This document shows positions 3,155 to 34,854 of a stretch of 36,111 nucleotides of DNA, piece by piece. Location: assembly GCA_002104945.1 (NCBI GenBank), contig MCFH01000123.1, forward strand, positions 1 through 36,111, given 5' to 3'. The translations under genes and the position numbers were made by a program. The notes below the pieces were generated by a model that was given only the letters and a program-made list of their open reading frames with translations, ran no database searches and was not told the DNA's origin. The stretch is from Piromyces finnis finn (Eukaryota > Fungi > Neocallimastigomycota). Position 1 is the stretch's first letter, and every line of letters begins with the position of its first letter.

Positions 3155-4435
3155 TTATAATTTTTTAAACAATTTCTCAAATTCTTTTAAACTATAAATA
3201 TTCATTTTAGCTTTATTATCTATGAAACATTTCACAATATCTTCATTAATATTTTTTCTTGTTATGGCAAAATAAAATATAGAACATTTATTTTTGCCTT
3301 TTGAGCGAATAATATAATTAACATTAGCACCGTGTTTTATCAGTAATTTAAGTATTTCACAATTATTTTTAATTATAGCTTGAATTATTGGAATTTTTCC
3401 ATTGACATAATTGATATTACCTTTGAAATACCTTAGTATCAATTTAAGAATATTTATATTTTCAGTTTCTATTGCCATATTTAAAGCGGAACATATAGCT
3501 TTTCCAATATTAATGTAATTTCTTCTTCCTTTTTTAATATATTTCAAAAACAATTTAGTATAATATACTAAATTTAGCTTTATTGAATAAAGTAAAGCGT
3601 TATCAAAATCGTCAATTTTAAATTCTTTACTTAACAAGTAATAAACCATTTTTTCAGACTCTTCCTCCTTTTCAATCATCATTCCCATAACTAACGGATT
3701 TATATGAAACTTTAATTTATGAATATTAATATAATAATCTATACAATCTATGAAATCAAATTTATCATATAGATGGGATTGTCTGTTACAAATTATAATT
3801 TTAAATAATTCTGTATTTGAATTGACATCCGAAAAATAATCTTTTAAATTTCTACTTCTACAACTTTTAAATATTTTATTTAATATCCCTTTTATATTAA
3901 AAAAAATAATTCCAGTAATAATATTTTCAGATGAGATAAGATTAATAAATTTATCTGAATCAATACTGAGTAAATACAATATAGAATATTTATCCTCTTT
4001 CAATAAAGCATAATATAATATTAAATTTTTATATCTATCTATCATGTTTACATTATTTATATTTACATATTTTTTAATATCGAAATTCTCATTAAATAAA
4101 TATGCTTTTATAATATCATTATCAAACATACAATCAATGGTATAAAGTGTTGAATTACTATTATTATTGTTTCTTTCATTATAATGATATCTTAGATGTC
4201 TATTATTATTATTTAATTTTAATCTTTTATTCTCATTTTCATCATCAATAATAATTATTGTTTCTGTTCTATTACGTTTATTCCTTTCTTCTATTGCTCT
4301 ATTACTATTTACGTCACTAAAACAGTTTTTCTCAGTATTTTGATATTCATTTACATTTTCTTCATCATCAATAATTATTATTGTTTCTGTTTTATCATGA
4401 ATATTCTCTTTTTCAAATATTCTATTATTATTCAC
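3155..4435 (-). CDS. Ankyrin-repeat protein segment (426 aa; ORF track uses a GTG start, frame is open further upstream)
   Basis: KIPIIQAIIKNNCEILKLLIKHGANVNY and CSIFYFAITRKNINEDIVKCFIDNKAKMN match the ankyrin consensus. Confidence 0.65.
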   Translation of the reverse strand: MNNNRIFEKENIHDKTETIIIIDDEENVNEYQNTEKNCFSDVNSNRAIEERNKRNRTETIIIIDDENENKRLKLNNNNRHLRYHYNERNNNNSNSTLYTIDCMFDNDIIKAYLFNENFDIKKYVNINNVNMIDRYKNLILYYALLKEDKYSILYLLSIDSDKFINLISSENIITGIIFFNIKGILNKIFKSCRSRNLKDYFSDVNSNTELFKIIICNRQSHLYDKFDFIDCIDYYINIHKLKFHINPLVMGMMIEKEEESEKMVYYLLSKEFKIDDFDNALLYSIKLNLVYYTKLFLKYIKKGRRNYINIGKAICSALNMAIETENINILKLILRYFKGNINYVNGKIPIIQAIIKNNCEILKLLIKHGANVNYIIRSKGKNKCSIFYFAITRKNINEDIVKCFIDNKAKMNIYSLKEFEKLFKKL

Positions 4436-4468
4436 ACCACTAAAGCAGTTTTTCTCAGTATTTTGATA
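4238..4468 (-). repeat. In-frame 123-bp (41-codon) tandem duplication (TEKNCFS...TETIIIIDDE x2)
   Basis: CAGTTTTTCTCAGTATTTTG at 4323 and 4446, and TTCATCATCAATAATTATTATTGTTTCTGTT-like blocks at 4238 and 4361; both offsets are 123 bp. Confidence 0.8.
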
Positions 4469-4497
4469 TGCAATTTTACTATTTTTGTTAGATTCAT

Positions 4498-5544
4498 TTA
4501 AATAGATATTTGAACTATTTTTACATATTTTATTTTTTTTATTAAATAATCAAAAATTATTATATTTATAACATGATTATTATCCTCTAAAGATTTTTCT
4601 ATTATGGTTTTATTTTCGCGATTTCTTAAATTTAAATCAGCGCCATAATCCAATAAAATTTTAAATAGACTATAATCTTGATTTAAATATTTTTCTTTAA
4701 ATGAATTACAACCACAATGTCTGTAAGAAATAAATAATGGATATTCATCATAACCATTACAATTACTATTGACATTAATTTGTTTATTAATTATTGGATG
4801 GAATAATAGACATTTAATCAATTCATGATTATTGTCTTTTATTCCATTAATAAATAAAAGACCAATATTCTTTTCTTTATAGTCATTTTTTATTTTCATA
4901 TATATTTTATCATTATTTTTGCTGAACATTATATTTTTATAAATGGCTTCAAGGTCCTTAATTTCAATAATAATGTTTTTTTTATCATACTTTTTTGGTG
5001 TCGAAATACCTAGTGATAATTCATCTAAATTAATTTTTAATAAGGATCCTATCATCTTGATATATTTTTCTTTATTATCAACAAAAATATCATTTTCAAT
5101 GGATTTTAAAATATATTTTAAATCTATATACGATTTTTTAAAACTTTTATTTAAAAGAAATTTTGGAATAAGAATATTGATTATTTTTTCTTTATTATTA
5201 TTATTTTTAATTAAAGATATTAATATTTCATTAATATCTATTTTATTAAAATTAAATGATTCATTAATGAAAAATGTGTTGCTAAATATTTTAATTTCAT
5301 TAACATTATTAAAATTATATTTTACACTATTCATTAATAAATCTTGAATATTTATATTATTAATAATTTTTAATTTTTTTTGCTTATTTAAAACATTAAT
5401 AAGCATTCTTAAAATATTAGTATATTTGTTATAATATACTGAATTTATAATATAATCAAATTTGACAGTATCATCTGGATATTCATTTACAATTGTTTCA
5501 ATAATATTTTCAAAATATTTATTATGTAAATGATTTTTATCCAT
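4498..5544 (-). CDS. Ankyrin-repeat protein segment (348 aa)
   Basis: EYPLFISYRH...FKILLDYGADLNLRNRENKTIIEKSLEDNN is an ankyrin repeat. Confidence 0.6.
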   Translation of the reverse strand: MDKNHLHNKYFENIIETIVNEYPDDTVKFDYIINSVYYNKYTNILRMLINVLNKQKKLKIINNINIQDLLMNSVKYNFNNVNEIKIFSNTFFINESFNFNKIDINEILISLIKNNNNKEKIINILIPKFLLNKSFKKSYIDLKYILKSIENDIFVDNKEKYIKMIGSLLKINLDELSLGISTPKKYDKKNIIIEIKDLEAIYKNIMFSKNNDKIYMKIKNDYKEKNIGLLFINGIKDNNHELIKCLLFHPIINKQINVNSNCNGYDEYPLFISYRHCGCNSFKEKYLNQDYSLFKILLDYGADLNLRNRENKTIIEKSLEDNNHVINIIIFDYLIKKIKYVKIVQISI

Positions 5545-5616
5545 TTTGTCAATAATTTTTAATAATATAGTATCATAATTTATATAATAATTGCCATTAT
5601 AAGAAAATAAAAAAAG

Positions 5617-6744
5617 TTATTTTAAAATACAATCTATAAATGAATATTTTTTATTTTCGGCATAAAAAAGTAAAAGGTTATAAAAACTAATATTTTTAAC
5701 AACATTTTCATTCATTTTTAAAAATTTTAATAACATTTCAATTATCCATATTTTAGATGAATTTGCTACATAGTATAATATGTTTTCAATAAATGAAATG
5801 TTATAATTTTCAAAATTATATTTTATAATATATTCTAATAAATTTAAATTATTTTCAACTCGACGTGTATAAGATACATCGCCAATAATATATTTATATA
5901 ATTTCAATTTATTTAATATTTTCACGATTTCACTTGAACTTTTTTTGTCATATTTTATTAATATGCTAATAGTTGGGTAATCGTAAGAGTCAACTTTTTT
6001 GTCGATATCCTTATATTCACAATTAAATTTTTCATAATTAAAAGTACGGTTATAGATTTTTTCAGTAAGATTAATATATGTTTTTTCACCGTATTTTAAT
6101 TCATAAATTTGATTATTTATTAAAGGAATCCTGTATTTAAAACAAGTTAAAAATTTAATGATATAAATGAAATTTTTATCTTTTAATTTATAATTTAAAA
6201 CACGCTTTAACATTTCTTCATTTTTGCTTTCAATCAACATTATAATAAAACTTTCAATATTTTTATCTAAATTTTCATTATCAAAGTTTTCTAAAAATTT
6301 TAATATTTTAACTATATCAACTTTCTCAATATAATATTTTTGAATGAAGGATATCAAATTTACCCCTTCGTTATTTACATAATTTGTATTAGCACCCATT
6401 CTCATTAAGGAATGTGCCAATAAAAATTGTTCTTTTATCATTGCATCAAATAATGGTATTTTAACATCGCCATCTATTTTAAATGTATAGTTTAATTCTT
6501 TATAATCAAAATACCTGATAATGCATAAAATTATATTTTTTGTATTTTCATTTTCTTTTTCGACAGTTCCTATAGCACAAGTAAGAACGTCAAACTTATT
6601 ATCTTGGTTCAATTTCATTCTAAATTTATTATAATTACTTTCATTTAATTTTTTTTCAAATGCTTGAGTATCAGTATTATTATCAATACAACATTTAATG
6701 AATTCTATTAATTCATCTATTTTTTCTTTTAACATAACAGCCAT
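5617..6744 (-). CDS. Ankyrin-repeat protein N-terminal segment (375 aa)
   Basis: FDVLTCAI and KIPLFDAMIKEQFLLAHSLMRMGANTNYVN resemble YDVLTNCI and KSPLYAAIANNHFKIADFIISKGGDINF in the 550-aa gene. Confidence 0.6.
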   Translation of the reverse strand: MAVMLKEKIDELIEFIKCCIDNNTDTQAFEKKLNESNYNKFRMKLNQDNKFDVLTCAIGTVEKENENTKNIILCIIRYFDYKELNYTFKIDGDVKIPLFDAMIKEQFLLAHSLMRMGANTNYVNNEGVNLISFIQKYYIEKVDIVKILKFLENFDNENLDKNIESFIIMLIESKNEEMLKRVLNYKLKDKNFIYIIKFLTCFKYRIPLINNQIYELKYGEKTYINLTEKIYNRTFNYEKFNCEYKDIDKKVDSYDYPTISILIKYDKKSSSEIVKILNKLKLYKYIIGDVSYTRRVENNLNLLEYIIKYNFENYNISFIENILYYVANSSKIWIIEMLLKFLKMNENVVKNISFYNLLLFYAENKKYSFIDCILK

Positions 6745-11119: not shown

Positions 11120-12870
11120 TTACTTTGATGGTGTATGTGTATCCGAATAAACTGGTTTCAAAACATACGCGGGATTTGTGGTTAAATTGTTATTAGAATT
11201 AGATTTAAGTTTTGATATCTTACATTTCAGGTAGTAGCCATTATACTTCGCCTCGAACACAAGCTGTTTGTTTGAATCACTTTGGGAATAATTATTTTTG
11301 CTACAATCATGCGGATCTTGATTAATTATTTTAATGTGATTTGATTGTTGAATGGTATTTATAAATTTAATTCTGATGATACTATTAATATCTGGTTCGT
11401 GGTTACTTATCTCATTATTTTGGATATCAAATAAAGTTAAAAATATTTGATTGTTATGATTTTTTATTTGAGTGCTAATACCAGATTTCGTTAACTTTAT
11501 CCCACTTATCAGGTTTTTATTGACGTCCTTTGAATATAGAACCTTATCTAAAACTATTTCAGTCTCATTAAATAACCCATGGAATGTACCGTAGCCTTCA
11601 AAAATACATGATGATTTATTTGTAAAATTTAAAATAATTTTTTCATTAATAAAATTTTCCAATATTTCTTTATTATTTGTGATATGTTCACTTGCGCCTG
11701 TATCATCCTGTATCATAGGTAGGTCCACATAAATGTTATGTAACCATCATTTTTATCATGTGACCTTGAAACATTACTTGGTCATATTTCTTCTGTATTT
11801 TCACTTGGAAAGACATTTTTAAGAGCTAGTTCGTCAAGTATATATTTCATGTGCTCAACCTTTAATTGGTCAGAATGTATGTTTATGTAACATTCATTTT
11901 CAGGGTTAGAAATATTTGGATCATCCATTTTTTCATTACTCTTTATTTTACTTTCAATATTGTCAGCTGTAGGTCCGAACATTGTATTTAATTCTTCATA
12001 GCATGGTGTACTATCTGTGGTTTCATTATTTTCAATGTTGGAACAATATTTATCTTCATTGGCTTCCTTTTTGTATGAGAATGTTTTGTGGGTTTGTTTA
12101 TTAGGATGTGTTTCATTTTTCTTTGTTCTTGTAGCTCGGCATGGATTGTAATGACAGTCCTTAACAGAATGTCCAGAAATGTTGCAAATTATACAATATT
12201 TATTATTTCTATGATGATATTTGTTTATTCTTTTATTTTTTGTGTATTTCTTTTCTATATTATCTATATCCATATAAGCATCATGAAAGTCTCTATATTC
12301 ATTGATGAATGGATTATTATAATGATTGTTTCCATTTCTAGCGTTTCTTGTATTAAAAGAGTTATTATCTCTTTGTTGATTATCTTGTTTATGTTTAAAA
12401 TTTGGGTTGTTATATTCCATCTGATAGCAAATAACAGTATATCTGTTTTTATGATTTCGTATAATGTTTCGGGTGTGTATTGAGAACTCATTAATATTTT
12501 ATCCTTGAGGATATTTGGTAGAGCGTTGTATATAATTGTTATTTTTTCCATGTTTGATTTGTTCATACATGAGTTTTCGAGTAATTTAAATAACTCTATA
12601 ATCTCATTCATGATATTCATGGTTTCCTTAAGGTTGGTGGCCTTGAGAGGTCCTAACCTTCTTAACCACTCTCCATGGTTGGAGGAGTCATCCGACTTGT
12701 ACAAGCTCTTGAGTTTCTCCATCTTCTCATATGCGGACTCACAGTTCATAATGTACCTTTTAACAGAGTCAGTACAATTTGTAAAAATGATTATTCCTGT
12801 GAGTGCATCATTTGGTTCAAATTTGCTTGGTTTCTTGAATGTTTTGTAGTTACTCTTGATGTAACTCCTT
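11120..12870 (-). pseudogene. Degenerate Ty1/copia gag-protease-partial integrase; RT and RNase H deleted, 5' LTR absent
   Basis: Gag-like DALTGIIIFTNCTDSVKRYIMNCESAYEKMEKLKSLY; CCHC knuckle CIICNISGHSVKDC; protease (WTY)DTGASEH plus VLYSKDVNKNLISG; integrase-like CKISKLK and PAYVLKPVYSD. Pieces are joined by a frameshift near 12430, a TGA at 11784-11782 and a 14-bp insertion at 11697-11724. Confidence 0.85.
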
Positions 12871-16266: not shown

Positions 16267-17919
16267 TTATACATTAAAAATCCATTGATCATGATCAATA
16301 TATCTATTAAAATATTTAAGAAATTCATGGTTTTTTATTGTTGTAGATAATATGTAAGTATTTTTATCATCTCCTCCTGCTTTTCTTAATTCTTTTAAAA
16401 TATATTTTACCTTTTGTTCTGATGATCTTTTATCAATAACAAAGAGATTTTCAATAATTTTATAGTTGTCGTTCTTCAAGGCGAAAGTATACCATTCATC
16501 TTGAAAATCGTTGTAATGAAGAAATTCCTTTACCAATAATAAAAATGTTTTATTTTTCTTTTCTTTTATTAATAATTTTAATATATATTGAGGTATATTT
16601 AACTTTTCAATTTTTTTAAATTTGTTTTTTAATATTTCAATAATGTAATCGAAATTTTCATATGAAAAGTTTTTTTGATGAATTAAAAATTGTATCACAT
16701 TGTTGAAGGAATTGTCCTTATCCAAAAATCTATAATTGATATCCGCACCTTTAGAAATAAGAAAGGTGCACACATCTCTTCTATTTATTAATAATGTATA
16801 AATGACTAAAGGTACTGATTCATTAATTAATGAATTTGGAATCTCATAATTGAAATTGGTGTATGAGAATAAGCTTATTATTTTTTTAAGTGAATCAATA
16901 GAAAATCCTGAAGTAATACAATTTGTTAATACGTCATAATCTGAAGAGTTTATATCACTTATTAATATTTCATTTTCTTGATAAAAATAAAATATTCTTT
17001 CCATATTTCCGTTCTTTATAAATTGACTTAATTCCATTCTTTTCTTAATCAAAATTTTATTCAAATATCTGTTAAGATGATTAATATCTAATATATTATT
17101 TAAGAAAATATTTTTATACTTATAGTTAATTATTAATTCATATAATTTAAGGGAGAATCCAGGATATATTATATCATTATTATTATCCATTATGAATTCA
17201 ATTTTTTCTCTAATTGAACTTGGAATATCATAACATGAAAAAAATTTTAATTGATCAAATGAACTACAATAAATACACCTATAGTACCATTGATATGGTA
17301 CATCGAAATTTCTTTCATTAATAATTATTTTATCAAATTGATCTTTCGATATGCTTTTTTTTGATTGGTATATTTTAAGTAATTTAATAACAAAGTTTTT
17401 ATCGCACTTATATTTGATATATTTGGATGCTAAATTGAAGTTAAAACTATAATTGTAAATATAATCTTTAATCTCCATTATATTCCAATTTTTGTTTAAA
17501 AGATATGAAAGAGTTTTAGTAGTTAGTAAATTTTTTTCAATTAATAATTTGAATATATTAATATTGTGTTGAGTAAAATTAATATCGCCCCCTTTGCTGA
17601 TAATGAAATCTGCAATTTTAAAATGATTGTTAGCAATTGCAGCGTATAATGGGGACTTTATTTCACCATTTTTGAAAATGATGAACTTGTTAAGCGGATA
17701 ATTCTTTTTTTCAATTAACAAATCTAAATATGCAATTGGAACATTGTATTCAATTGCAGAAATGACCTCATCAAAATCTTTTTCCTCAATTAAATGGTTT
17801 GGTTGAATCATTTCATTTGATACTTCTATATCCTCAAATAACTCTATATCTGAAGTGTAAGAATTATTTGACAAGATCATTGTTGAAGTTTCAGTACTAT
17901 CAATTTCAAAAGATGACAT
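16267..17919 (-). CDS. Ankyrin-repeat-containing protein, 550 aa, apparently intact and single-exon
   Basis: Uninterrupted ATG-to-TAA ORF in very AT-rich DNA; ankyrin motifs KSPLYAAIANNHFKIADFIISKGGDINF and VPLVIYTLLINRRDVCTFLISKGADINY. Confidence 0.85.
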   Translation of the reverse strand: MSSFEIDSTETSTMILSNNSYTSDIELFEDIEVSNEMIQPNHLIEEKDFDEVISAIEYNVPIAYLDLLIEKKNYPLNKFIIFKNGEIKSPLYAAIANNHFKIADFIISKGGDINFTQHNINIFKLLIEKNLLTTKTLSYLLNKNWNIMEIKDYIYNYSFNFNLASKYIKYKCDKNFVIKLLKIYQSKKSISKDQFDKIIINERNFDVPYQWYYRCIYCSSFDQLKFFSCYDIPSSIREKIEFIMDNNNDIIYPGFSLKLYELIINYKYKNIFLNNILDINHLNRYLNKILIKKRMELSQFIKNGNMERIFYFYQENEILISDINSSDYDVLTNCITSGFSIDSLKKIISLFSYTNFNYEIPNSLINESVPLVIYTLLINRRDVCTFLISKGADINYRFLDKDNSFNNVIQFLIHQKNFSYENFDYIIEILKNKFKKIEKLNIPQYILKLLIKEKKNKTFLLLVKEFLHYNDFQDEWYTFALKNDNYKIIENLFVIDKRSSEQKVKYILKELRKAGGDDKNTYILSTTIKNHEFLKYFNRYIDHDQWIFNV

Positions 17920-18286: not shown

Positions 18287-19270
18287 TTTAAGATTTAAAT
18301 AAAAAAAACTATTTTTTTTAATTCAAGGATCATATTAATTAAAATTTTTTTTTAATATTTAAAAAATTTTTATAATAAATTTCAGTAGTTATTACCTATT
18401 ATTTAAACTTATTATTTATTTTGATATTACATTTTTTTTATTAATATAAAATTATGAACTTTTCTTATTATAATAATCCCCTTTCATTTGTAGTTTCAAA
18501 AAATTTCAAGGGATAATATATTCCAACCTACTTGAAATATATTTATTATTATCCATAATAATATGGTAAATATTAATTTCATTCAAAATATAATTTGCTT
18601 TTTATCATAAACATCTATATAAATTCAATGTATCTTTATCGTCAGTATTTTTTTTAACATTCTATTTAATTCATATGAATTATGAATTCATAAATATAAT
18701 ATATTAATTGTTTATTACGCATTGATACATTGTTATAATTTAGTTAATATTTAAAAAAAAAATAAAAGTGAATCTCAGTTTATTTATTTTAAAAATTTTT
18801 ATGACTTAAACAATAAAAACTAATTGTAATCTTAGGTAGAATAATAATATTATAAAAGAAATAACGGTTTCCTCTATTTCTATATGTAATTCGATAGATT
18901 CTGAAAATCTATCAACAGGAAAAAATTTTTATCCCATATTTTAATGTTTTATTTCTCTACATTTTTTACTATCCTCTTTTATAGGCATTTTAATATTAAT
19001 TATTATAAATTTAAAATATTTAGTTTTATCAATGAATTAAAAATATTCAAATATAGTTATTTAGTATATATTAGATAATGTTGAACTAATATCTGTTGAT
19101 AATATATTTATATAATTTTTTTTTTTTTTTGAATATTAATATTAAAGCTACGTAATTTTTATTTATTAATAACATTAATTTAATTAAATTACATTATATA
19201 TAAAAAATTAAATAATAAAATATATAAGAATTTTTTGGATTGAAATGAAAAGACTGACACTTTCTTCCCT

Positions 19271-19282
19271 TTTACGAAATCT
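19271..19282. repeat. Left target-site duplication TTTACGAAATCT
   Basis: Identical to 19856-19867. Confidence 0.93.
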
Positions 19283-19815
19283 GGTCGTTCCAGTTTTTAT
19301 CCTGGTTGTTAAGGCGTTTCCTTAGCATACATAAGGCTTCTGGTTCGACCCCGCAGATGTCAGTGCCTGTGGATTTTCCCACTGGGTTTGCCATGGGTTG
19401 GGTTATGATATTCAGGTAAGTATAAATGAACTTTCTAATTTACTACTATGATAATAACACTCGTCTAGCCGGCCTGAGAGGGTCTAGTGTACATGGTACA
19501 TTCCAAATTAGAACTTAATAAGTGGTGACTTAGGCTATGCCAAAAACACATAATATTCCTTAATCAATTTAAGTGTAAACATTAGGGGGCGGTTGACACG
19601 TGATCAAATTGACTATAAGAGGCTTAGCATTGTAGTTGTGAAATATCGTACAACGACATGCATCTAATGTACATGGATTAAGTGAGCGTCGAAGCTGAAG
19701 AAACAGTATGACAGACCAGGAGGGTCACAACCACCTAGCAATAGGAATGAGCCAACGTTTCTCTAAGAACCACCATTGGAGCTAACTCTGATCGATGGGA
19801 GAAATGCACTCGGAA

Positions 19816-19855
<40 letters not shown>
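19283..19855 (+). mobile_element. Non-coding poly(A)-tailed retroposon, 573 bp (candidate SINE or retrocopied structured RNA)
   Basis: Perfect 12-bp TSD; pure A37 tail (19819-19855); ~42% GC by hand count over 536 nt versus very AT-rich flanks; B-box match GGTTCGACCCC (19342-19352); no substantial ORF; removal restores the host RT frame. Confidence 0.85.
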
Positions 19856-19858
<3 letters not shown>

Positions 19859-19867
19859 ACGAAATCT
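19856..19867. repeat. Right target-site duplication TTTACGAAATCT
   Basis: Directly follows the poly(A); identical to 19271-19282. Confidence 0.93.
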
Positions 19868-22800
19868 AAATTGTTTGTCTAATGAAATTATTTTTAAGAC
19901 CATATTTTAAAAATTCTAGTGGTGGCAATTTTCGAGATCAACTTAATACCATTATTGATAAGTGATATGTCTTGGTAATTATCATAATCTGTCAAGTCTT
20001 CCTTCTTAGGAATAGAAAAAATATTGGATTCATAAATTATTCATAAATTATCCATCCCAAATACGGTTGAATAAAATTTAAACCATTAGTATCGATATCT
20101 GAAGTGACATTATCAGAAGAATTATTATTTGTAACATTATTAGAATCATTATTTGAAGAAATTTATACCTTGTAAAAATTAATTGGAACACCATCCAAAC
20201 CCGATGCTTTATAATTAGGAGTAGGGAGGATAGCTGACTTGACTTTATTAATACTAATATCTTGGTTGATATCCCATTTATCAAACAAAGGGAGTGAAAA
20301 ACGCTTATTTATTGATTCTTCATACCAATGCTCCAAATCAAGACTTTCACCACTTGGATCAGATGCAAGATTTTCGAAATAGTCATGCTAAACCTCTAGT
20401 TGTTCTTTCGTAACAACTAAATCTCCACTTTTATTTTTAGTTGGTTGAGCAGTTAAGAAAGTATCTTTTCCAAATTTTGCAGTTTTCTTGATCTATTTCC
20501 AGGCCTTCTTTGGATTATGCCTTTTCATATACTCACATCCTTTTTTAATCCAATTAAGTTCCTATAATTATTACATCTTTTGTGAATGTAATTGATGAGC
20601 TTACGGTAGATTTTAATCCTTTTAATAAATTCTTCTATACCATAAACTCTTTCTTTTTTAAATCTCCTATACAGCTTCATTTTGATTTTTTGGAGATTAA
20701 AAATTTGTTGTGAAATATGAAATGAAGATTTTATAACATTATTTTATAAAATAATACTGAGCTCATCTGCAATTGAAAAAGCAGATAAAGTAAACTCATT
20801 GGAAAGTTCATCTATAGAAACATTAGGATCGTTGAGTTTTGCTGAAAGTATTTGGAATTTATTATGACTGAGAATAGATTCCTTTTCCTTAAAACATTTT
20901 AATCTATTCCATTTCAGAATTTTCATAGAAACATTAAAGTCATTAGAAAAATCATCCATAGGAATAATTTTATAATTAATAAGGAGTGGCTTATGATCTT
21001 ATACAGGATAAAAATCATCTATAAATGATCCTGAGTGAATAAGATCTTTCATCTTCGAATTGACATGAGCATAATCAATGTCGGGTGATTGATTACTTCG
21101 AGTCCAAGAGATAGAAGAATCTTTAAGTGGAAGTACTTCCCAATCTCCTAATTCATTAGATGATAACCAGTTGGATAATTTTACTTTAGACATATTAAAA
21201 TCACCAACAAGAATCAATGGATAATATGAATGAAATTGCAACCACAAGCGTACTTCTAACTTTGTATGATCAACATAGATGTAGTAATGACAATGAGGCA
21301 TATAAAAATATCCAATCGAGCATTTGAATCTATTCCAAAGGCTAAAAGTATAAATAGAAATAACATACTTTCCTGTGTAGTTTTCAAGTGAGGCTTGTCA
21401 CGAATTGTAAATACCTAAATATAAACTTCTCATGCTGGCCACTGATTCATCAGCTTTCTTGAACATGTGTCTATGGTTTCGTAAAGTAACACGACAAGAA
21501 TACTCTGTATTCGATCCATAACCATTATCAGTTTCTTGAAAACATAAAAACAATAGTTTGAAAATAGTTTTGAAATAACTAATATTATATCTTTTTTCGT
21601 GATTCCACCCATTGGTATTCTAACTAAGACAAAACAAAAAGTTATTAGGCTTGTTGGATGAGAAAGAATTGTTGCTATTATTATTATTATAGTCATCATT
21701 ATTAATGGATGATGCAACAGAGGAATTAGTTGAACTATTATTAGATGGCTGTGTAACTGAAGAACTATCAACTATTGAACTGTTATCGGAGTTGATTGAA
21801 CTATCAGAAATAACTGTTGAATGTTGAGGCTGAAACTATGTTTGTTATAGTTCTGGAATATATTCATGTTGAAAATCCTGTTGAAGATCTTGTTGAAGTT
21901 GGATTTGATTAGATTGATGATATGAATATTAACAAGATTGATGAATTGACTGTTGAATTGTTTGTTGATGTTCATTAAAAACTAAAAATTTATGTTTGAG
22001 TGAAGAAAAAAATGCATTTGTAATTCCTTCTACTACGAGCTGAAAAGGAAATTGAAGCAATGGAAAGTTTCTTTCTTAAGATGTGTAAGATTTTATTCCA
22101 GTCTTTCGTTGAACCATGAACCTTGACTAAAAAAAGGGATCATTGAAATTCTTATATTGATATTTATTCCATACTTGAATAATATTTTTAGAATTTCTTT
22201 ATTTCTAAGTCAAAAAAGCTATATGTAATTAAGTTATTGTTTCATTTTTATTCACACTGACGATTTTTAAATATTTCATTGCATATATTAAAATATATTA
22301 AAATTGAGAATAGAATTGGATTTATGTTTTGTTTTGCTTTTTTTTTTTTTTTTTTTTTTTTTACTAATATTAATTTAAAATCTCGCTTTAATACTTCCTA
22401 TTATATTTTTATAATAAAACCATTATCCTATTTAAAATATTTCACAAATTCATAATCTCTTTCACATTCATAATTTTCAAATAGTTCTTTCAATATGCTT
22501 TTCAATATTATTTTTTCCTTTTGAATTAATAAACAGTTTAATAACTTTAAATCTTAAGAATTAAAATATCTCTATTTATACAAATCATATATATTTAGAC
22601 TGTATTACTATTGTATATTTTTCATTTTTATAATAATCATTGTTCATTTCTATCTATCTATATATTATGTTTTATAACATGAGTTATATTAATATTATCA
22701 TTTCATAATAAAATTGAAAAAAATAAAATGATATTTATCCCATTTATATTTATATAAAAAGACCATTTTTACAATGTTCAAATTCTTTTCTTAACAAAAA

Positions 22801-24556: not shown

Positions 24557-27500
24557 TTGGAGGATTTAATTAGTGAGTTTGAAAATTTAAATTTAGAAAT
24601 GGGTGATAGGAATGTGGGTGTTTCCGGGAACTCGGGGAACATTATTAATGCTCCACCGACATTTTCTGGTAAACAAAGAGAATTGGATGGATTTTTAACT
24701 AGAGTGGAGTTGGTATTTCGTACTCGACCGACACTGTATAATACAGATCGAGTCAAGGTCGACTTCGTTATATCATACTTTTCTGGTAAACCTTTGGAAT
24801 GGGCTTCAGTGTTGATGAAGAATAATAGTGAGGTTTTAAACCATTATGATGAATTTGTAGATAGGTTGAAGGCTAACTTTGGCAGTTATAGATACGATAC
24901 CGTTGTAGCTAACGGAAAATTAGATAATCTTCGCCAAAGGAAACTTGGTCAGGTATTAGATTACATTACCGAGTTTCAACGTATTAGCCAAAATTCAAGC
25001 TTTAATGATAGCGCAAAAATCTACATGTTTCTGAAAGGTTTATTACCACCACTTAGGGAGAAGTTGGCTTTCATTGAATCAAACCCAACTTCAATTGAAC
25101 AATTGATTTCTTCAACTAAAATAGTTGAAGATATGATGAAAAGGAATTCTTTAAGTGAATTTTATTTTAATGGTAGAAGGGCTAATGATCCTATGGATGT
25201 GGATGTATTTAAAATTAGTAGAGAGAATAAACGAAAAAGGTATGTGAATATTCAAGGATCAAGTAAAAATTACAATGAAAACATAGATAACTTTGAAAAA
25301 GAAAAGAAAAAAGGGTTATGTTTTCTTTGTAAACAACCGGGACATTTAAAATTTAATTGTCCTAATAGAGTAAAGCCCAGAAAAGTGTTAAGAATTGTTA
25401 AAGAAAGGACTCCAAAAATTGTTAATCCAAAAATTTACAAAGTTGGAGTCAAGGGAGTGAAAAGTGATTTAAACCTTGTGGACTTTTACTTGAGTACCAA
25501 TGAAGTTTCGGAAGTTAAAATTAAGGTTTTAATTGATTCCGGTTCTGAATTAAATTTCATTAATCCAAGTCTTGCTGAAGAACTTGGTATTAATTTGGAA
25601 AAAGTAGAACCATTCCGTGTTTCAGGTGTTAGTGATGGAGTTGTTAGTGTTTGGGAAAGGACTGAGAAGTGCATGCTCCGTTGCAAAAATCACTTCGAAG
25701 TAATTCAACTTTATGGATTACAAGTCCCCGGTGTTGATGTTATTCTTGGTTTGCCGTGGATAAAGAAGCATGATCCAAATGCTTTCTACGACTCTAAGAA
25801 AATCGCTTTTAGTTCTGGTTATTGTGCCAGACATTGTAATAAAGGCAAAAGAAAGAGAAAACCAAGAAAGAAGTCAAAGAATGATCAGTTAGATCATGAT
25901 GTTCTCGACCGAAGCTTGACCAAAAAGCCGAAAGTAGATCCCTCTGTCCCAAAAAATGAAGAAAAAGAATATGTTAAAGGCCGCCTTGTTAGAACCATCA
26001 ATGATGAAGATGATAGCGATGATGAATATATTAGTTTTAATAAAAAAGTTAAATGTATTGTAACAAAAATTAATGAAACATGTAATAATGATAACGAATC
26101 ATGTAGTAATAATAATAATAATGGAAAAGATATTAATAAAGATAAATTGGTCGCCGTACCAACCCAATATTTAGAATTTAGTGAAGTGTTTAATGAAAAA
26201 AATTGTGAAGTGTTACCTCCTCATAGACCTTATGATTGTGAAATCAAACTTAAAGATGATTCGACTTTATTTTATGGACCTTTGTATCCATTAACTGAAG
26301 TTGAAAGAGAGGAACTTAAAAAATATATTGATGATAATTTAAATAAAGGTTTTATTAGGAAATCATCGTCTCCTGCTGGTGCCCCAATTTTATTTGTTAA
26401 AAAGAAGGATGGCTCCCTAAGACTTTGTATCGATTATAGAAAGTTGAATGATATTACCATTCGTAATTCATATCCTTTACCTTTAATTAGTGACCTTTTG
26501 GATAGGGTGAAAAATGCTAAGATTTTTACTAAATTAGACCTTAAATCCGCTTATAATCTTGTTCGTATTAAAGAAGGTGACGAATACAAAACGGCTTTTC
26601 GTACTAGATATGGACATTTTGAATATCTGGTTATGCCTTTTGGATTAAAGAATGCACCTGCAACTTTTCAACACTTCATTAACGATGTCCTTAGTGACTG
26701 TTTAGACGATTTTGTTATCTCATATATTGATGATATTCTTATTTATTCTAATAATATCGAAGAACATCATGAGCATGTTAAAAAGGTACTTAAGAAACTA
26801 CTTGAAAATAATCTTTATGTTAAATTAGAAAAATGTGAGTTTGATGTTGAGAAAACCACTTTTCTTGGTTATGTCATTTCAAAGGATGGATTGCAAATGG
26901 ATGAAAATAAAGTTAAAGCAATTCTCGATTGGCCGGTTCCCAAGAATGTTAAAGAGGTTCAGTCTTTTATTGGTTTATGCAACTATTACAGAATTTTTAT
27001 TAAAGACTTTGCTAAAATTGCAAACCCTCTTCACAAACTCACTAGAAAGAATGTTGCTTTTAACTGGGTGAAAGAAGATCAGGACGCTTTTATTTTATTA
27101 AAATCTCTGTTCACGTCAGCTCCTATTCTGAAACATGCGGATAGTAATAAACAATTTATTGTAGAAACTGATGCTAGTAATTATGCTGTCGGTGCTATTC
27201 TCTCTCAAGAATTTGATGGCAAATTACATCCTATTGCATTTCTTTCTAAAAGTTTGACGAGTTGTCAAAGAAACTATCCTATATATGACAAGGAACTTTT
27301 AGCTATTGTAGTTGCTCTTGAAGAATGGCGTCATTATTTAGAAGGTGCACGCCATCCGTTCATAATTTATACTGATCACAAGAATTTAACATTTCCTAGA
27401 AAACCTGAAATGTTATCTCAGAGACAAATTAGATGGAATTTGTTCTTATCCAGATTTGATTTTAAACTCATTTATAGAGCTGGAAAGAAATCCGGTAAGC

Positions 27501-29149
27501 CTGATATCCTGTCTCGTAGAAGTGACCATGTAGAGAATAATATTAATTCTGATGTTTCTTGTCTTACTATTTCGTTTCATCATAGCGATAACAAACCGTT
27601 AATCGATTCTATTTTATTAGAACTTAAAAATGACGATTTGTATAATTCTATTGTCCAATTTAAAATGAATGGTTCTGCATGTAATGCACCTATTAAAAAT
27701 ATTGATAAAGTTATTATTGATAATGAAGGATTTTTGTTATATAATAATCTTATTTATGTTCCTAAATCTCTTAGGACAAGAGTTTTGGAACTTCATCATG
27801 ATTCTGTTGCTGCTGGTCATTTCGGTATTAAGAAAACCACTGAACTGATTTCCAGAAACTTTTGGTGGCCAAGGTTTCATTCAGATGTTAAATCTTTTAT
27901 CAAATCTTGCGTGACTTGTTGCAAATCCAAAGTCCCCAGACATAAGCCTTATGGATTGTTATCCCCTTTGGACACTCCCAGTAGGCCCTGGTCTGATATT
28001 TCTATTGATTTTATTGTTGATCTTCCTAAGTCCAGAGATATGACAACTCTCATGGTTGTTGTCGATAGATTTACTAAATTTGCTCACGCCATTCCTTTAC
28101 GTTGTCTTCCTACTGCTTCGATTGCTGCTGATGCTTTTATTGCTAATGTCTTCCGTTTGCATGGTCTTCCTGATTCCATCATTTCTGATAGAGGCTCGCA
28201 ATTTACTTCTGACTTTTGGTCAAGACTTTGTGACCTTCTTAATATCAATCATTCATTATCAACTGCCAACCATCCGCAGACAGATGGTCAAACGGAGAGG
28301 GTGAACGGCATATTAGAACAATATTTCCGTTGTTTTATAAATAAAAAGCAGAATAACTGGGTTGATCTTATCCCATTTGCTGAATTTGCATATAATAATA
28401 CTTTACAACAATCTATAAATCAATCTCCATTCTTTGCTAATTATGGTTTTCATCCAAAGTTCAGCTTAGAAATTCCAGCTAATGATAGACCTAGTAGAGC
28501 TGAACAAAGAGTAATTGATATGAATGAAAACTTTAAATTATTAAAAGAAAACTTAGAAAAAGCAAAAGAAACATATAAGAAATATGCCGATATGAAGAGA
28601 ATGATTCCCCCGGAGTTCGAAGTGGGAAAGAAGGTATGGTTATTGAAAGATTCTCCTGGAACTAACCTAAAGAGAAAATTAGCACCTCAAATGCTTGGCC
28701 CATTTGAGATAATTGGAAAAGTTAGTTCTCTCGCTTTCAAATTGAAACTTCCAAAGACAATGAGATGTCATCCAGTCTTTCATGTTTCATTGTTAGAACC
28801 ATACTTTGAAAACAAGTTTAACGACAGGTCTAATCGTAGGAAGAGGAACATTCACCTTAACACAGATTTAATTGAAAAAATTCCAGAGAAAATTGAAAAG
28901 ATGAAATCTGTTAATGGTGAAACATTTTATAAGTTATCATGGAAAGGATTTGACAAATCCACTTGGATTTCTGAAGATCAGATTCCAGATAAACAATTAA
29001 TACAAGAGTTTGAAAGAAACTCTAAAAAGTCAAAATATAAGTCGAAAGACTCCTCCATGAAAATTAGAAAGAATAAAGTTGGTAATCTAATCAAGCACAG
29101 ATACCAACCATTTGTAATTGAAATTCCTTCGAGAAAAGATTCCTTATAA
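24557..29149 (+). CDS. Single-ORF Gag-Pol polyprotein, copy 1: capsid, CCHC, protease, RT, RNase H, integrase, chromodomain (ORF track start is TTG; first in-frame ATG is 24599)
   Basis: PPTFSG...PLEWA capsid; PMDVD; CFLCKQPGHLKFNC; LIDSGS; YIDD; VETDAS; HHDSVAAGH...CVTC; DFIVD/SDRG/QTERVN; GPF motif; YKLSWKGFDKSTWISE chromodomain. PR-RT-RH-IN order. Confidence 0.97.
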   Translation: MEDLISEFENLNLEMGDRNVGVSGNSGNIINAPPTFSGKQRELDGFLTRVELVFRTRPTLYNTDRVKVDFVISYFSGKPLEWASVLMKNNSEVLNHYDEFVDRLKANFGSYRYDTVVANGKLDNLRQRKLGQVLDYITEFQRISQNSSFNDSAKIYMFLKGLLPPLREKLAFIESNPTSIEQLISSTKIVEDMMKRNSLSEFYFNGRRANDPMDVDVFKISRENKRKRYVNIQGSSKNYNENIDNFEKEKKKGLCFLCKQPGHLKFNCPNRVKPRKVLRIVKERTPKIVNPKIYKVGVKGVKSDLNLVDFYLSTNEVSEVKIKVLIDSGSELNFINPSLAEELGINLEKVEPFRVSGVSDGVVSVWERTEKCMLRCKNHFEVIQLYGLQVPGVDVILGLPWIKKHDPNAFYDSKKIAFSSGYCARHCNKGKRKRKPRKKSKNDQLDHDVLDRSLTKKPKVDPSVPKNEEKEYVKGRLVRTINDEDDSDDEYISFNKKVKCIVTKINETCNNDNESCSNNNNNGKDINKDKLVAVPTQYLEFSEVFNEKNCEVLPPHRPYDCEIKLKDDSTLFYGPLYPLTEVEREELKKYIDDNLNKGFIRKSSSPAGAPILFVKKKDGSLRLCIDYRKLNDITIRNSYPLPLISDLLDRVKNAKIFTKLDLKSAYNLVRIKEGDEYKTAFRTRYGHFEYLVMPFGLKNAPATFQHFINDVLSDCLDDFVISYIDDILIYSNNIEEHHEHVKKVLKKLLENNLYVKLEKCEFDVEKTTFLGYVISKDGLQMDENKVKAILDWPVPKNVKEVQSFIGLCNYYRIFIKDFAKIANPLHKLTRKNVAFNWVKEDQDAFILLKSLFTSAPILKHADSNKQFIVETDASNYAVGAILSQEFDGKLHPIAFLSKSLTSCQRNYPIYDKELLAIVVALEEWRHYLEGARHPFIIYTDHKNLTFPRKPEMLSQRQIRWNLFLSRFDFKLIYRAGKKSGKPDILSRRSDHVENNINSDVSCLTISFHHSDNKPLIDSILLELKNDDLYNSIVQFKMNGSACNAPIKNIDKVIIDNEGFLLYNNLIYVPKSLRTRVLELHHDSVAAGHFGIKKTTELISRNFWWPRFHSDVKSFIKSCVTCCKSKVPRHKPYGLLSPLDTPSRPWSDISIDFIVDLPKSRDMTTLMVVVDRFTKFAHAIPLRCLPTASIAADAFIANVFRLHGLPDSIISDRGSQFTSDFWSRLCDLLNINHSLSTANHPQTDGQTERVNGILEQYFRCFINKKQNNWVDLIPFAEFAYNNTLQQSINQSPFFANYGFHPKFSLEIPANDRPSRAEQRVIDMNENFKLLKENLEKAKETYKKYADMKRMIPPEFEVGKKVWLLKDSPGTNLKRKLAPQMLGPFEIIGKVSSLAFKLKLPKTMRCHPVFHVSLLEPYFENKFNDRSNRRKRNIHLNTDLIEKIPEKIEKMKSVNGETFYKLSWKGFDKSTWISEDQIPDKQLIQEFERNSKKSKYKSKDSSMKIRKNKVGNLIKHRYQPFVIEIPSRKDSL

Positions 29150-30261: not shown

Positions 30262-33200
30262 TTGGAGGATTTAATTAGTGAGTTTGAAAATTTAAATTTA
30301 GAAATGGGTGATAGGAATGTGGGTGTTTCCGGGAACTCGGGGAACATTATTAATGCTCCACCGACATTTTCTGGTAAACAAAGAGAATTGGATGGATTTT
30401 TAACTAGAGTGGAGTTGGTATTTCGTACTCGACCGACACTGTATAATACAGATCGAGTCAAGGTCGACTTCGTTATATCATACTTTTCTGGTAAACCTTT
30501 GGAATGGGCTTCAGTGTTGATGAAGAATAATAGTGAGGTTTTAAACCATTATGATGAATTTGTAGATAGGTTGAAGGCTAACTTTGGCAGTTATAGATAC
30601 GATACCGTTGTAGCTAACGGAAAATTAGATAATCTTCGCCAAAGGAAACTTGGTCAGGTATTAGATTACATTACCGAGTTTCAACGTATTAGCCAAAATT
30701 CAAGCTTTAATGATAGCGCAAAAATCTACATGTTTCTGAAAGGTTTATTACCACCACTTAGGGAGAAGTTGGCTTTCATTGAATCAAACCCAACTTCAAT
30801 TGAACAATTGATTTCTTCAACTAAAATAGTTGAAGATATGATGAAAAGGAATTCTTTAAGTGAATTTTATTTTAATGGTAGAAGGGCTAATGATCCTATG
30901 GATGTGGATGTATTTAAAATTAGTAGAGAGAATAAACGAAAAAGGTATGTGAATATTCAAGGATCAAGTAAAAATTACAATGAAAACATAGATAACTTTG
31001 AAAAAGAAAAGAAAAAAGGGTTATGTTTTCTTTGTAAACAACCGGGACATTTAAAATTTAATTGTCCTAATAGAGTAAAGCCCAGAAAAGTGTTAAGAAT
31101 TGTTAAAGAAAGGACTCCAAAAATTGTTAATCCAAAAATTTACAAAGTTGGAGTCAAGGGAGTGAAAAGTGATTTAAACCTTGTGGACTTTTACTTGAGT
31201 ACCAATGAAGTTTCGGAAGTTAAAATTAAGGTTTTAATTGATTCCGGTTCTGAATTAAATTTCATTAATCCAAGTCTTGCTGAAGAACTTGGTATTAATT
31301 TGGAAAAAGTAGAACCATTCCGTGTTTCAGGTGTTAGTGATGGAGTTGTTAGTGTTTGGGAAAGGACTGAGAAGTGCATGCTCCGTTGCAAAAATCACTT
31401 CGAAGTAATTCAACTTTATGGATTACAAGTCCCCGGTGTTGATGTTATTCTTGGTTTGCCGTGGATAAAGAAGCATGATCCAAATGCTTTCTACGACTCT
31501 AAGAAAATCGCTTTTAGTTCTGGTTATTGTGCCAGACATTGTAATAAAGGCAAAAGAAAGAGAAAACCAAGAAAGAAGTCAAAGAATGATCAGTTAGATC
31601 ATGATGTTCTCGACCGAAGCTTGACCAAAAAGCCGAAAGTAGATCCCTCTGTCCCAAAAAATGAAGAAAAAGAATATGTTAAAGGCCGCCTTGTTAGAAC
31701 CATCAATGATGAAGATGATAGCGATGATGAATATATTAGTTTTAATAAAAAAGTTAAATGTATTGTAACAAAAATTAATGAAACATGTAATAATGATAAC
31801 GAATCATGTAGTAATAATAATAATAATGGAAAAGATATTAATAAAGATAAATTGGTCGCCGTACCAACCCAATATTTAGAATTTAGTGAAGTGTTTAATG
31901 AAAAAAATTGTGAAGTGTTACCTCCTCATAGACCTTATGATTGTGAAATCAAACTTAAAGATGATTCGACTTTATTTTATGGACCTTTGTATCCATTAAC
32001 TGAAGTTGAAAGAGAGGAACTTAAAAAATATATTGATGATAATTTAAATAAAGGTTTTATTAGGAAATCATCGTCTCCTGCTGGTGCCCCAATTTTATTT
32101 GTTAAAAAGAAGGATGGCTCCCTAAGACTTTGTATCGATTATAGAAAGTTGAATGATATTACCATTCGTAATTCATATCCTTTACCTTTAATTAGTGACC
32201 TTTTGGATAGGGTGAAAAATGCTAAGATTTTTACTAAATTAGACCTTAAATCCGCTTATAATCTTGTTCGTATTAAAGAAGGTGACGAATACAAAACGGC
32301 TTTTCGTACTAGATATGGACATTTTGAATATCTGGTTATGCCTTTTGGATTAAAGAATGCACCTGCAACTTTTCAACACTTCATTAACGATGTCCTTAGT
32401 GACTGTTTAGACGATTTTGTTATCTCATATATTGATGATATTCTTATTTATTCTAATAATATCGAAGAACATCATGAGCATGTTAAAAAGGTACTTAAGA
32501 AACTACTTGAAAATAATCTTTATGTTAAATTAGAAAAATGTGAGTTTGATGTTGAGAAAACCACTTTTCTTGGTTATGTCATTTCAAAGGATGGATTGCA
32601 AATGGATGAAAATAAAGTTAAAGCAATTCTCGATTGGCCGGTTCCCAAGAATGTTAAAGAGGTTCAGTCTTTTATTGGTTTATGCAACTATTACAGAATT
32701 TTTATTAAAGACTTTGCTAAAATTGCAAACCCTCTTCACAAACTCACTAGAAAGAATGTTGCTTTTAACTGGGTGAAAGAAGATCAGGACGCTTTTATTT
32801 TATTAAAATCTCTGTTCACGTCAGCTCCTATTCTGAAACATGCGGATAGTAATAAACAATTTATTGTAGAAACTGATGCTAGTAATTATGCTGTCGGTGC
32901 TATTCTCTCTCAAGAATTTGATGGCAAATTACATCCTATTGCATTTCTTTCTAAAAGTTTGACGAGTTGTCAAAGAAACTATCCTATATATGACAAGGAA
33001 CTTTTAGCTATTGTAGTTGCTCTTGAAGAATGGCGTCATTATTTAGAAGGTGCACGCCATCCGTTCATAATTTATACTGATCACAAGAATTTAACATTTC
33101 CTAGAAAACCTGAAATGTTATCTCAGAGACAAATTAGATGGAATTTGTTCTTATCCAGATTTGATTTTAAACTCATTTATAGAGCTGGAAAGAAATCCGG

Positions 33201-34854
33201 TAAGCCTGATATCCTGTCTCGTAGAAGTGACCATGTAGAGAATAATATTAATTCTGATGTTTCTTGTCTTACTATTTCGTTTCATCATAGCGATAACAAA
33301 CCGTTAATCGATTCTATTTTATTAGAACTTAAAAATGACGATTTGTATAATTCTATTGTCCAATTTAAAATGAATGGTTCTGCATGTAATGCACCTATTA
33401 AAAATATTGATAAAGTTATTATTGATAATGAAGGATTTTTGTTATATAATAATCTTATTTATGTTCCTAAATCTCTTAGGACAAGAGTTTTGGAACTTCA
33501 TCATGATTCTGTTGCTGCTGGTCATTTCGGTATTAAGAAAACCACTGAACTGATTTCCAGAAACTTTTGGTGGCCAAGGTTTCATTCAGATGTTAAATCT
33601 TTTATCAAATCTTGCGTGACTTGTTGCAAATCCAAAGTCCCCAGACATAAGCCTTATGGATTGTTATCCCCTTTGGACACTCCCAGTAGGCCCTGGTCTG
33701 ATATTTCTATTGATTTTATTGTTGATCTTCCTAAGTCCAGAGATATGACAACTCTCATGGTTGTTGTCGATAGATTTACTAAATTTGCTCACGCCATTCC
33801 TTTACGTTGTCTTCCTACTGCTTCGATTGCTGCTGATGCTTTTATTGCTAATGTCTTCCGTTTGCATGGTCTTCCTGATTCCATCATTTCTGATAGAGGC
33901 TCGCAATTTACTTCTGACTTTTGGTCAAGACTTTGTGACCTTCTTAATATCAATCATTCATTATCAACTGCCAACCATCCGCAGACAGATGGTCAAACGG
34001 AGAGGGTGAACGGCATATTAGAACAATATTTCCGTTGTTTTATAAATAAAAAGCAGAATAACTGGGTTGATCTTATCCCATTTGCTGAATTTGCATATAA
34101 TAATACTTTACAACAATCTATAAATCAATCTCCATTCTTTGCTAATTATGGTTTTCATCCAAAGTTCAGCTTAGAAATTCCAGCTAATGATAGACCTAGT
34201 AGAGCTGAACAAAGAGTAATTGATATGAATGAAAACTTTAAATTATTAAAAGAAAACTTAGAAAAAGCAAAAGAAACATATAAGAAATATGCCGATATGA
34301 AGAGAATGATTCCCCCGGAGTTCGAAGTGGGAAAGAAGGTATGGTTATTGAAAGATTCTCCTGGAACTAACCTAAAGAGAAAATTAGCACCTCAAATGCT
34401 TGGCCCATTTGAGATAATTGGAAAAGTTAGTTCTCTCGCTTTCAAATTGAAACTTCCAAAGACAATGAGATGTCATCCAGTCTTTCATGTTTCATTGTTA
34501 GAACCATACTTTGAAAACAAGTTTAACGACAGGTCTAATCGTAGGAAGAGGAACATTCACCTTAACACAGATTTAATTGAAAAAATTCCAGAGAAAATTG
34601 AAAAGATGAAATCTGTTAATGGTGAAACATTTTATAAGTTATCATGGAAAGGATTTGACAAATCCACTTGGATTTCTGAAGATCAGATTCCAGATAAACA
34701 ATTAATACAAGAGTTTGAAAGAAACTCTAAAAAGTCAAAATATAAGTCGAAAGACTCCTCCATGAAAATTAGAAAGAATAAAGTTGGTAATCTAATCAAG
34801 CACAGATACCAACCATTTGTAATTGAAATTCCTTCGAGAAAAGATTCCTTATAA
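30262..34854 (+). CDS. Single-ORF Gag-Pol polyprotein, copy 2 (first ATG 30304)
   Basis: Translation identical to copy 1 in the ORF track. Confidence 0.97.
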   Translation: MEDLISEFENLNLEMGDRNVGVSGNSGNIINAPPTFSGKQRELDGFLTRVELVFRTRPTLYNTDRVKVDFVISYFSGKPLEWASVLMKNNSEVLNHYDEFVDRLKANFGSYRYDTVVANGKLDNLRQRKLGQVLDYITEFQRISQNSSFNDSAKIYMFLKGLLPPLREKLAFIESNPTSIEQLISSTKIVEDMMKRNSLSEFYFNGRRANDPMDVDVFKISRENKRKRYVNIQGSSKNYNENIDNFEKEKKKGLCFLCKQPGHLKFNCPNRVKPRKVLRIVKERTPKIVNPKIYKVGVKGVKSDLNLVDFYLSTNEVSEVKIKVLIDSGSELNFINPSLAEELGINLEKVEPFRVSGVSDGVVSVWERTEKCMLRCKNHFEVIQLYGLQVPGVDVILGLPWIKKHDPNAFYDSKKIAFSSGYCARHCNKGKRKRKPRKKSKNDQLDHDVLDRSLTKKPKVDPSVPKNEEKEYVKGRLVRTINDEDDSDDEYISFNKKVKCIVTKINETCNNDNESCSNNNNNGKDINKDKLVAVPTQYLEFSEVFNEKNCEVLPPHRPYDCEIKLKDDSTLFYGPLYPLTEVEREELKKYIDDNLNKGFIRKSSSPAGAPILFVKKKDGSLRLCIDYRKLNDITIRNSYPLPLISDLLDRVKNAKIFTKLDLKSAYNLVRIKEGDEYKTAFRTRYGHFEYLVMPFGLKNAPATFQHFINDVLSDCLDDFVISYIDDILIYSNNIEEHHEHVKKVLKKLLENNLYVKLEKCEFDVEKTTFLGYVISKDGLQMDENKVKAILDWPVPKNVKEVQSFIGLCNYYRIFIKDFAKIANPLHKLTRKNVAFNWVKEDQDAFILLKSLFTSAPILKHADSNKQFIVETDASNYAVGAILSQEFDGKLHPIAFLSKSLTSCQRNYPIYDKELLAIVVALEEWRHYLEGARHPFIIYTDHKNLTFPRKPEMLSQRQIRWNLFLSRFDFKLIYRAGKKSGKPDILSRRSDHVENNINSDVSCLTISFHHSDNKPLIDSILLELKNDDLYNSIVQFKMNGSACNAPIKNIDKVIIDNEGFLLYNNLIYVPKSLRTRVLELHHDSVAAGHFGIKKTTELISRNFWWPRFHSDVKSFIKSCVTCCKSKVPRHKPYGLLSPLDTPSRPWSDISIDFIVDLPKSRDMTTLMVVVDRFTKFAHAIPLRCLPTASIAADAFIANVFRLHGLPDSIISDRGSQFTSDFWSRLCDLLNINHSLSTANHPQTDGQTERVNGILEQYFRCFINKKQNNWVDLIPFAEFAYNNTLQQSINQSPFFANYGFHPKFSLEIPANDRPSRAEQRVIDMNENFKLLKENLEKAKETYKKYADMKRMIPPEFEVGKKVWLLKDSPGTNLKRKLAPQMLGPFEIIGKVSSLAFKLKLPKTMRCHPVFHVSLLEPYFENKFNDRSNRRKRNIHLNTDLIEKIPEKIEKMKSVNGETFYKLSWKGFDKSTWISEDQIPDKQLIQEFERNSKKSKYKSKDSSMKIRKNKVGNLIKHRYQPFVIEIPSRKDSL

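Follow-up and report, generated by a model that had tools for sequence, protein, structure and literature searches.

A young SINE-like retroposon family of Piromyces finnis with a putative RNA module in common with an L1-like LINE

Introduction

SINEs are rarely documented in fungi. A candidate is present in the stretch of 36,111 nucleotides that is analysed here as a whole and referred to as the window (Piromyces finnis, Neocallimastigomycota; contig MCFH01000123.1, positions 1 to 36,111). At positions 19271-19867 of the window, an A-tailed sequence flanked by short repeats interrupts an older LINE. The locus raises two questions: from what kind of RNA the inserted sequence was copied, and which enzyme did the copying. 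The original prediction, drawn from the letters of the window, proposed a young SINE and named a 5'-truncated LINE 3' UTR and a retrocopied RNA as alternatives.

The window has other features as well. Two uninterrupted gag-pol ORFs of 1530 aa each (24557-29149 and 30262-34854, both on the plus strand and 1.1 kb apart) are of the Ty3/gypsy-type LTR retrotransposon kind; zinc knuckle, protease, RT, integrase and a chromodomain-like end can be recognised in them by eye. More long ORFs are found in somewhat GC-richer islands on the minus strand, at 3155-6744 (348-426 aa), 11120-12749 (161-212 aa) and 16267-17919 (550 aa).

Results

The insert is 573 bp long and is read on the plus strand. It consists of a single extra G (19283), a non-coding body of 535 nt (19284-19818) and a pure A37 tail (19819-19855), and it lies between perfect 12-bp target-site duplications with the sequence TTTACGAAATCT; the predicted length, perfect duplication and A37 tail are confirmed. 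The left duplication (19271-19282) corresponds to about LINE-B reference positions 3405-3416, and the right one occupies 19856-19867. The extra G stands outside the duplication and outside the start of the family consensus (GTCG). The GC content of the body is 41.7%, compared with 23.4% for the window, and its longest stop-free frame has 52 codons. These values, together with the position of the host on the minus strand, agree with the earlier description of an insert of about 42% GC that has no ORF and is antisense to its host. The first part of the body is a GC-rich head of about 132 nt (19284-19415) containing a T5 run, the motif TTAGCAT and a B box. It is followed by an AT-rich, intron-like spacer (19416-19468) of the form GTAAGT ... 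CTAAT ... TAG. Runs of four or more T occur in the body only at element positions 11 (T5, 19294-19298) and 91.

The host of the insertion is an old copy of the LINE-B family (19116-22148, minus strand) that is 5'-truncated at reference position 1091 and matches the reference at 87% identity over 2329 nt. The host's 3' UTR and A tail, both decayed, are found at 19116-19230 on the minus strand, with 70% identity over the 3' UTR piece, and an internal deletion has removed about 2.1 kb between reference positions 3457 and ~5568. The two flanks of the insert overlap on LINE-B reference positions 3408-3416, as expected of a target duplication. When the insert and one duplication were deleted in silico, an unbroken minus-strand LINE peptide, SLDKQFRFRKREESVSLFISIQKIL, was obtained, which includes the stretch QFRFRK-REESVSLFISI. 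Paralogous LINE copies at loci L064-L068 run straight across the reconstructed junction in 601-nt alignments of 83-85% identity. The claim that removal of the insert restores a reverse transcriptase peptide was thus borne out by both the frame and the paralogues. The accompanying claim of nesting inside a LINE reverse transcriptase can be made more specific, as the host belongs to LINE-B, the presumed partner family. The retroposon inserted antisense into a dead copy of its presumed partner LINE. As an ordinary retroposon copy inside a dead LINE, the window insertion has no effect on a host gene.

The whole 56.46-Mb assembly of 232 contigs was searched for other copies. The search gave 875 first-look candidates, and the best 40 of these, the only ones scored, were all 100% identical over the full length. 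A 31-mer from the 5' end occurs exactly 149 times in the whole assembly and 200 times at up to two mismatches, while a 35-mer from the 3' end (the last 29 bases and six A) occurs 267 times. From the difference between these counts, roughly 200 copies (about three quarters) are full length and about 70 have no 5' end. The family therefore comprises a few hundred dispersed copies, many of them identical, in an AT-rich genome. Heads on contigs 14, 39, 52, 79 and 101 are not accompanied by the standard 3' 35-mer.

Thirty copies were inspected together with their flanks. All 30 begin at GTCG, and in 26 of them the target duplication is clean and measures 10-17 bp, most often 12-13 bp. Tail length varies between A11 and A96, the median over all 30 copies being 35. 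At 23 of the 27 tabulated sites a T precedes the duplication, and at every one of the 27 the first base of the duplication is A or T. The extra G outside the duplication was seen in two of the 30 copies, that at locus L001 and that in the window. A chance repeat is ruled out as the explanation of the boundaries, since 26 of 30 other copies share them, each with its own duplications. The same 26 copies carry the marks, duplication and poly(A), from which the original prediction had deduced target-primed reverse transcription. It follows that the source was a discrete, A-tailed RNA with one constant 5' end (GTCG...), which has been copied into the genome by this route. The family is young, and is active or very recently active, as shown by the identity of all 40 scored copies and by tails made up of long A runs; the expectation of a recently active, non-autonomous family is in agreement with this. 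The window insert itself is very probably a single recent insertion of a non-autonomous, non-coding, SINE-like retroposon.

Older material is also present in the genome. Decayed heads of the family were observed, along with a tail fragment of 55 nt with 81% identity (L005:1184-1237) and a 99% copy at the edge of locus L039. An isolated fragment of 87 nt, L068:9243-9329 (G000:C79:408242-408328), is 91-93% identical to the body of the retroposon (91% to its positions 245-329) and has neither tail nor head. As a single isolated piece it was rejected as a separate family, and it is probably the relic of an old copy. At G000:C150:542410-542550 (minus strand), the 5' 31-mer occurs twice without mismatch, in the same orientation and at a distance of 110 bp, which could represent a tandem or a rearranged head. 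Head variants with T or G in place of A just after TTAGCAT were found at 21-23 places (for example, C13:497462, C101:341990 and C178:658966), and the T variant common to about 20 copies suggests a separate subfamily. In metagenome contigs and viral contigs, no relatives were found by exact-pattern matching, a result that is little informative in that an exact match was required.

The uniform start of the copies bears directly on the possibility that the insert is the 5'-truncated 3' UTR of a LINE, or a LINE deletion derivative of the RIME/ingi type. Some 50 nt are indeed common to the retroposon and LINE-B, and each of the two terminates in GTT and then A(n). However, truncated LINE copies would not share one 5' end in 30 of 30 inspected copies or be full length in ~75% of the family, and the genome-wide check of 5' ends recommended earlier gave the outcome proper to a SINE, with no staggered series. 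In no case among the 30 inspected copies does the sequence run on into an RT ORF. The retroposon has no similarity to any LINE 5' UTR, on which ground the RIME-like derivative was rejected. The comparison of its 3' end with full-length LINE tails, which had also been proposed, likewise gave no similarity to the last ~320 nt of LINE-B or LINE-A beyond the common segment. An origin as a LINE fragment, which the original prediction had kept as an alternative, is therefore extremely improbable.

The only departure from the uniform start does not alter this assessment. The copy at locus L007 (L007:1468-1500; G000:C13:750231-750249) has 18 extra bases, GGGGCGTAAAAGAAAGAA, before GGTCG, within its 13-bp duplication TTTAACAATATCA. 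This extension is non-coding, and the 29-mer across its junction is unique in the genome. Either a template switch or a master copy, since lost, in which transcription began further upstream could account for it. A search for a source or master locus by means of the extension located no master, and no source locus with different flanks was seen among the copies inspected. The intron-like spacer was also considered. The "spliced" junction, in which the GTAAGT...TAG segment would be removed, has no match in the genome at up to three mismatches. An intron in the element was rejected on this basis, no genomic copy without the segment 19416-19468 having been found, and so was a processed retrocopy of a spliced host gene, for which the inspected copies also gave no source locus.

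The head contains the signals that are of interest for transcription. The B box, GGTTCGACCCC, is located at 19342-19352 and starts at +59 from the 5' end of the element. It is the sole B-box match on either strand of the 36-kb window, where 0.02 would be expected from shuffles, and the predicted B box about 60 nt from the 5' end is thus well founded. The motif TTAGCAT (19322-19328) is separated by 13 nt from GGTTCGA. Read from the sequence, this spacing is that of a canonical tRNA, which has the same gap from position 38 to position 52. The fold of the head has a z-score of -2.8. No A-box match was found in the head. ARAGORN detected no tRNA genes in the window, in the region or in the head alone, and Rfam gave no match to a tRNA, 5S, 7SL or snRNA model at E values up to 10, also when the head was searched alone. 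A single Rfam match to snoR16 was dismissed as chance (E 4.2, opposite strand, outside the insert). Three patterns of the TTAGCAT...TTCRANNC type were used to look for resident tRNA-Ala(AGC) genes, and all 21-23 matches proved to be head variants of the retroposon. Given the absence of ARAGORN and Rfam matches and of a resident tRNA gene, the head was rejected as a recognisable tRNA-Ala, only the spacing TTAGCAT-13 nt-GGTTCGA being tRNA-like. The head may be a decayed tRNA-Ala. The retroposon behaves like a SINE in being short, non-coding and dispersed, with one 5' end, target duplications and an A tail, but has no demonstrable small-RNA head. The SINE label first given to it holds as far as a discrete retroposon family with a fixed 5' end is concerned; in the strict Pol III sense it is tentative, as no A box, tRNA model match or resident tRNA source was found.

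These features invite the question of whether the element is transcribed by Pol II. It would then be a capped non-coding RNA, belonging to a retrocopy family of the SVA-like or lncRNA type and copied in trans by the LINE protein, with an A tail either templated or added and the B box as a relic. Pol III might stop at the T5 run (19294-19298) at +11, a caveat that was raised at the outset and still stands. With 535 nt, the element would also be a rather long Pol III transcript. The missing A box and the missing tRNA or Rfam match point in the same direction, as does the intron-like GTAAGT...TAG segment, and the additional 5' G in two of 30 copies and the one upstream extension of 18 nt would fit a capped RNA. 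However, the extra G is rare, no spliced variant exists in the genome, and the spacing of the B box, both from the 5' end and from the anticodon-loop-like TTAGCAT, is canonical. In addition, neither AATAAA nor ATTAAA occurs anywhere in the element, while in both resident LINEs AATAAA is followed by 25-30 nt and then A(n). Pol II transcription is for these reasons unlikely, and Pol III transcription of the element is somewhat more probable than not.

A scan for the endonuclease domain revealed two abundant LINE families in the genome, each with many intact ORFs. LINE-A has an ORF of 1478 aa in an element of ~5.8 kb, and LINE-B has an ORF of ~1512 aa, of which there are dozens of that size, in an element of ~5.7 kb. 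The RVT_1 domain is present in both, and their proteins are 35% identical. Among solved structures, LINE-B is closest to human L1 ORF2p (E 1e-33); R2 proteins score E 1e-18. A homologue annotated from Neocallimastix lanati puts the lineage with the anaerobic gut fungi. The target duplications are 11-16 bp at T|A sites for LINE-B and 12-15 bp for LINE-A; those of both families resemble the duplications of the retroposon, and their length does not separate the two families as possible partners of the retroposon.

Several further observations were made on these LINEs. Despite the 35% protein identity, LINE-A and LINE-B have the same 5' terminus, CCCTCTTGGGAACGTGCCTTCATTT... (L065:757-1005; L063:701; L061, L062), and the LINE-B 5' UTR contains a 123-bp tandem duplication. 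Besides the segment described below, a second short motif, GGRAGTCAAA, is kept beside the ORF stop across LINE-B relatives from different metagenomes (L065:6205-6222; L069, L071, L072, L074, L075). It is located just after the stop codon, or just before it in L071, and a long AT-rich 3' UTR lies downstream of it in the LINE-B relatives. Local clustering is evident at locus L064 (G000:C1:1174500-1184499), where four LINE-B 3' ends, several of them nested or adjacent, occur within 10 kb.

The segment that the retroposon has in common with LINE-B comprises element positions 401-450, with 85% identity to the final ~26 codons of the LINE-B ORF. Nothing else in the retroposon resembles either LINE, and no counterpart of the segment was found in LINE-A, which was for this reason rejected as its source. 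The segment contains a predicted three-helix RNA module of ~45-50 nt, placed at 19688-19726 on the plus strand in the window copy. It was compared with seven relatives of LINE-B from independent metagenome assemblies that have 37-58% aa identity in the C-terminal region. The nucleotide identity of the module is 83-94% in these seven relatives, and drops to 56-68% in the 300 nt upstream and 51-58% in the next 300 nt. Over 11 sequences, 96.7% of the cells in the three helices are standard pairs, compared with 9-38% when the partners are slid. The helix 16-19/26-29 is fully paired, with one change of G-C to G-U, while its loop varies in a way that alters the encoded residues. The pair 11-33 changes from U-A to C-G in two metagenomic LINEs, and the pair 37-47 from G-C to A-U in the retroposon and L069, with an A/C intermediate in L070. 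This covariation is modest: two pairs are involved, in a sample of 11 sequences, and the changes may go back to two independent events. Combined with the local nucleotide conservation within an otherwise diverging ORF, it indicates that the module is under selection on its predicted RNA shape in the LINE-B lineage, and that this shape has been kept by the retroposon.

In neither element is the module at the 3' end: 85-135 nt separate it from the tail of the retroposon, and ~320 nt from that of LINE-B. Within the last 85 nt of the retroposon there is no more than a faint resemblance to the GGRAGTCAAA motif that follows the LINE stop codon.

Discussion

The arrangement of the retroposon and of the resident LINEs allows a mechanism to be proposed. 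The element would be transcribed, probably from an internal Pol III-type promoter with its B box at +59, and its A tail would already be encoded in the source copy instead of being added downstream of an AATAAA signal. The copying enzyme is probably the EN-RT protein of the resident L1-like LINE-B. The SINE RNA would be recognised partly through the A tail and also via the three-helix module that matches the last ~26 codons of LINE-B, which would probably aid capture of the RNA by newly made LINE protein.

Mobilisation by LINE-A, with its ORF of 1478 aa, or by any LINE through the A tail alone has to be weighed against this mechanism. The module would then be a passive leftover of recombination with LINE-B. 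LINE-A is likewise intact and young, and it has similar duplications of 12-15 bp. Mammalian L1-type enzymes are able to use any A-tailed RNA, and the non-terminal position of the module would agree with recognition of this general kind. This alternative is nevertheless quite unlikely, in view of the missing counterpart in LINE-A, the conservation of the module as an RNA structure in the relatives of LINE-B, and a pairing in the SINE that has been kept through a two-sided change.

In the most far-reaching reading, the retroposon would be the first described SINE family of the anaerobic gut fungi, and its mobilisation would depend on a structured RNA module within the final codons of an L1-like LINE ORF. 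This full proposal is put forward tentatively, with somewhat less than even confidence. If it is true, a coding-region cis element that is conserved across LINE lineages of several species has been captured by a SINE, and through the module the cis-preference of a LINE otherwise dependent on the A tail could have a sequence-specific basis. The hairpin module in the coding sequence is a testable candidate for template recognition by a LINE of the A-tail type. For this fungus, which is studied in biotechnology, the family also represents an active source of insertional variation and offers a convenient marker with which to type strains.

The mechanism as such is ordinary, and no publication describing the family was found. 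A full-text literature search returned no paper combining Neocallimastigomycota, SINE and retrotransposon, and the top-ranked results of a further search included no description of SINEs in anaerobic fungi.

Comparison can be made with several known systems. The SINEs of other fungi include Mg-SINE of Magnaporthe, Foxy of Fusarium oxysporum and EGH24-1/Eg-R1 of Blumeria. These are non-coding, LINE-dependent elements of several hundred bases, with A tails, target duplications and tens to hundreds of copies. The present family resembles them in length class, A tail, duplications, dispersal and presumed dependence on a LINE, a likeness that is one of description only. It differs from them in belonging to Neocallimastigomycota, in a head with no recognisable tRNA, and in its internal, LINE-derived hairpin module.

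In stringent LINE-SINE pairs, such as UnaL2 and UnaSINE1 of the eel, a common stem-loop is located at the very 3' end, beside short repeats. The retroposon is comparable to UnaSINE1 in that it carries a small conserved RNA structure copied from a LINE, which is likely to be a recognition handle. However, its module corresponds to the last codons of the LINE, some way before either tail. The retroposon and LINE-B also have long A tails, as in L1 and Alu, in place of the short repeats of the eel pair.

SINEs with LINE-derived middle bodies have been described in animals (PMC5786205; Genome Biol Evol 2018). The present family is similar to them in having a LINE-derived segment within the retroposon body and not only at its tail. 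That work is not known to include a fungal example or a coding-region hairpin.

A further parallel is with Alu and L1 of primates. The retroposon resembles Alu in its presumed dependence on an A tail and on an L1-like EN-RT, in target nicks at T|A, in the lack of a polyadenylation signal and in young, near-identical copies that follow a master-copy pattern. Alu originates from 7SL, is ~300 nt long, gains access to the ribosome via SRP9/14 and has no sequence in common with L1. The retroposon of P. finnis, in contrast, has a length of 535 nt and one segment in common with LINE-B.
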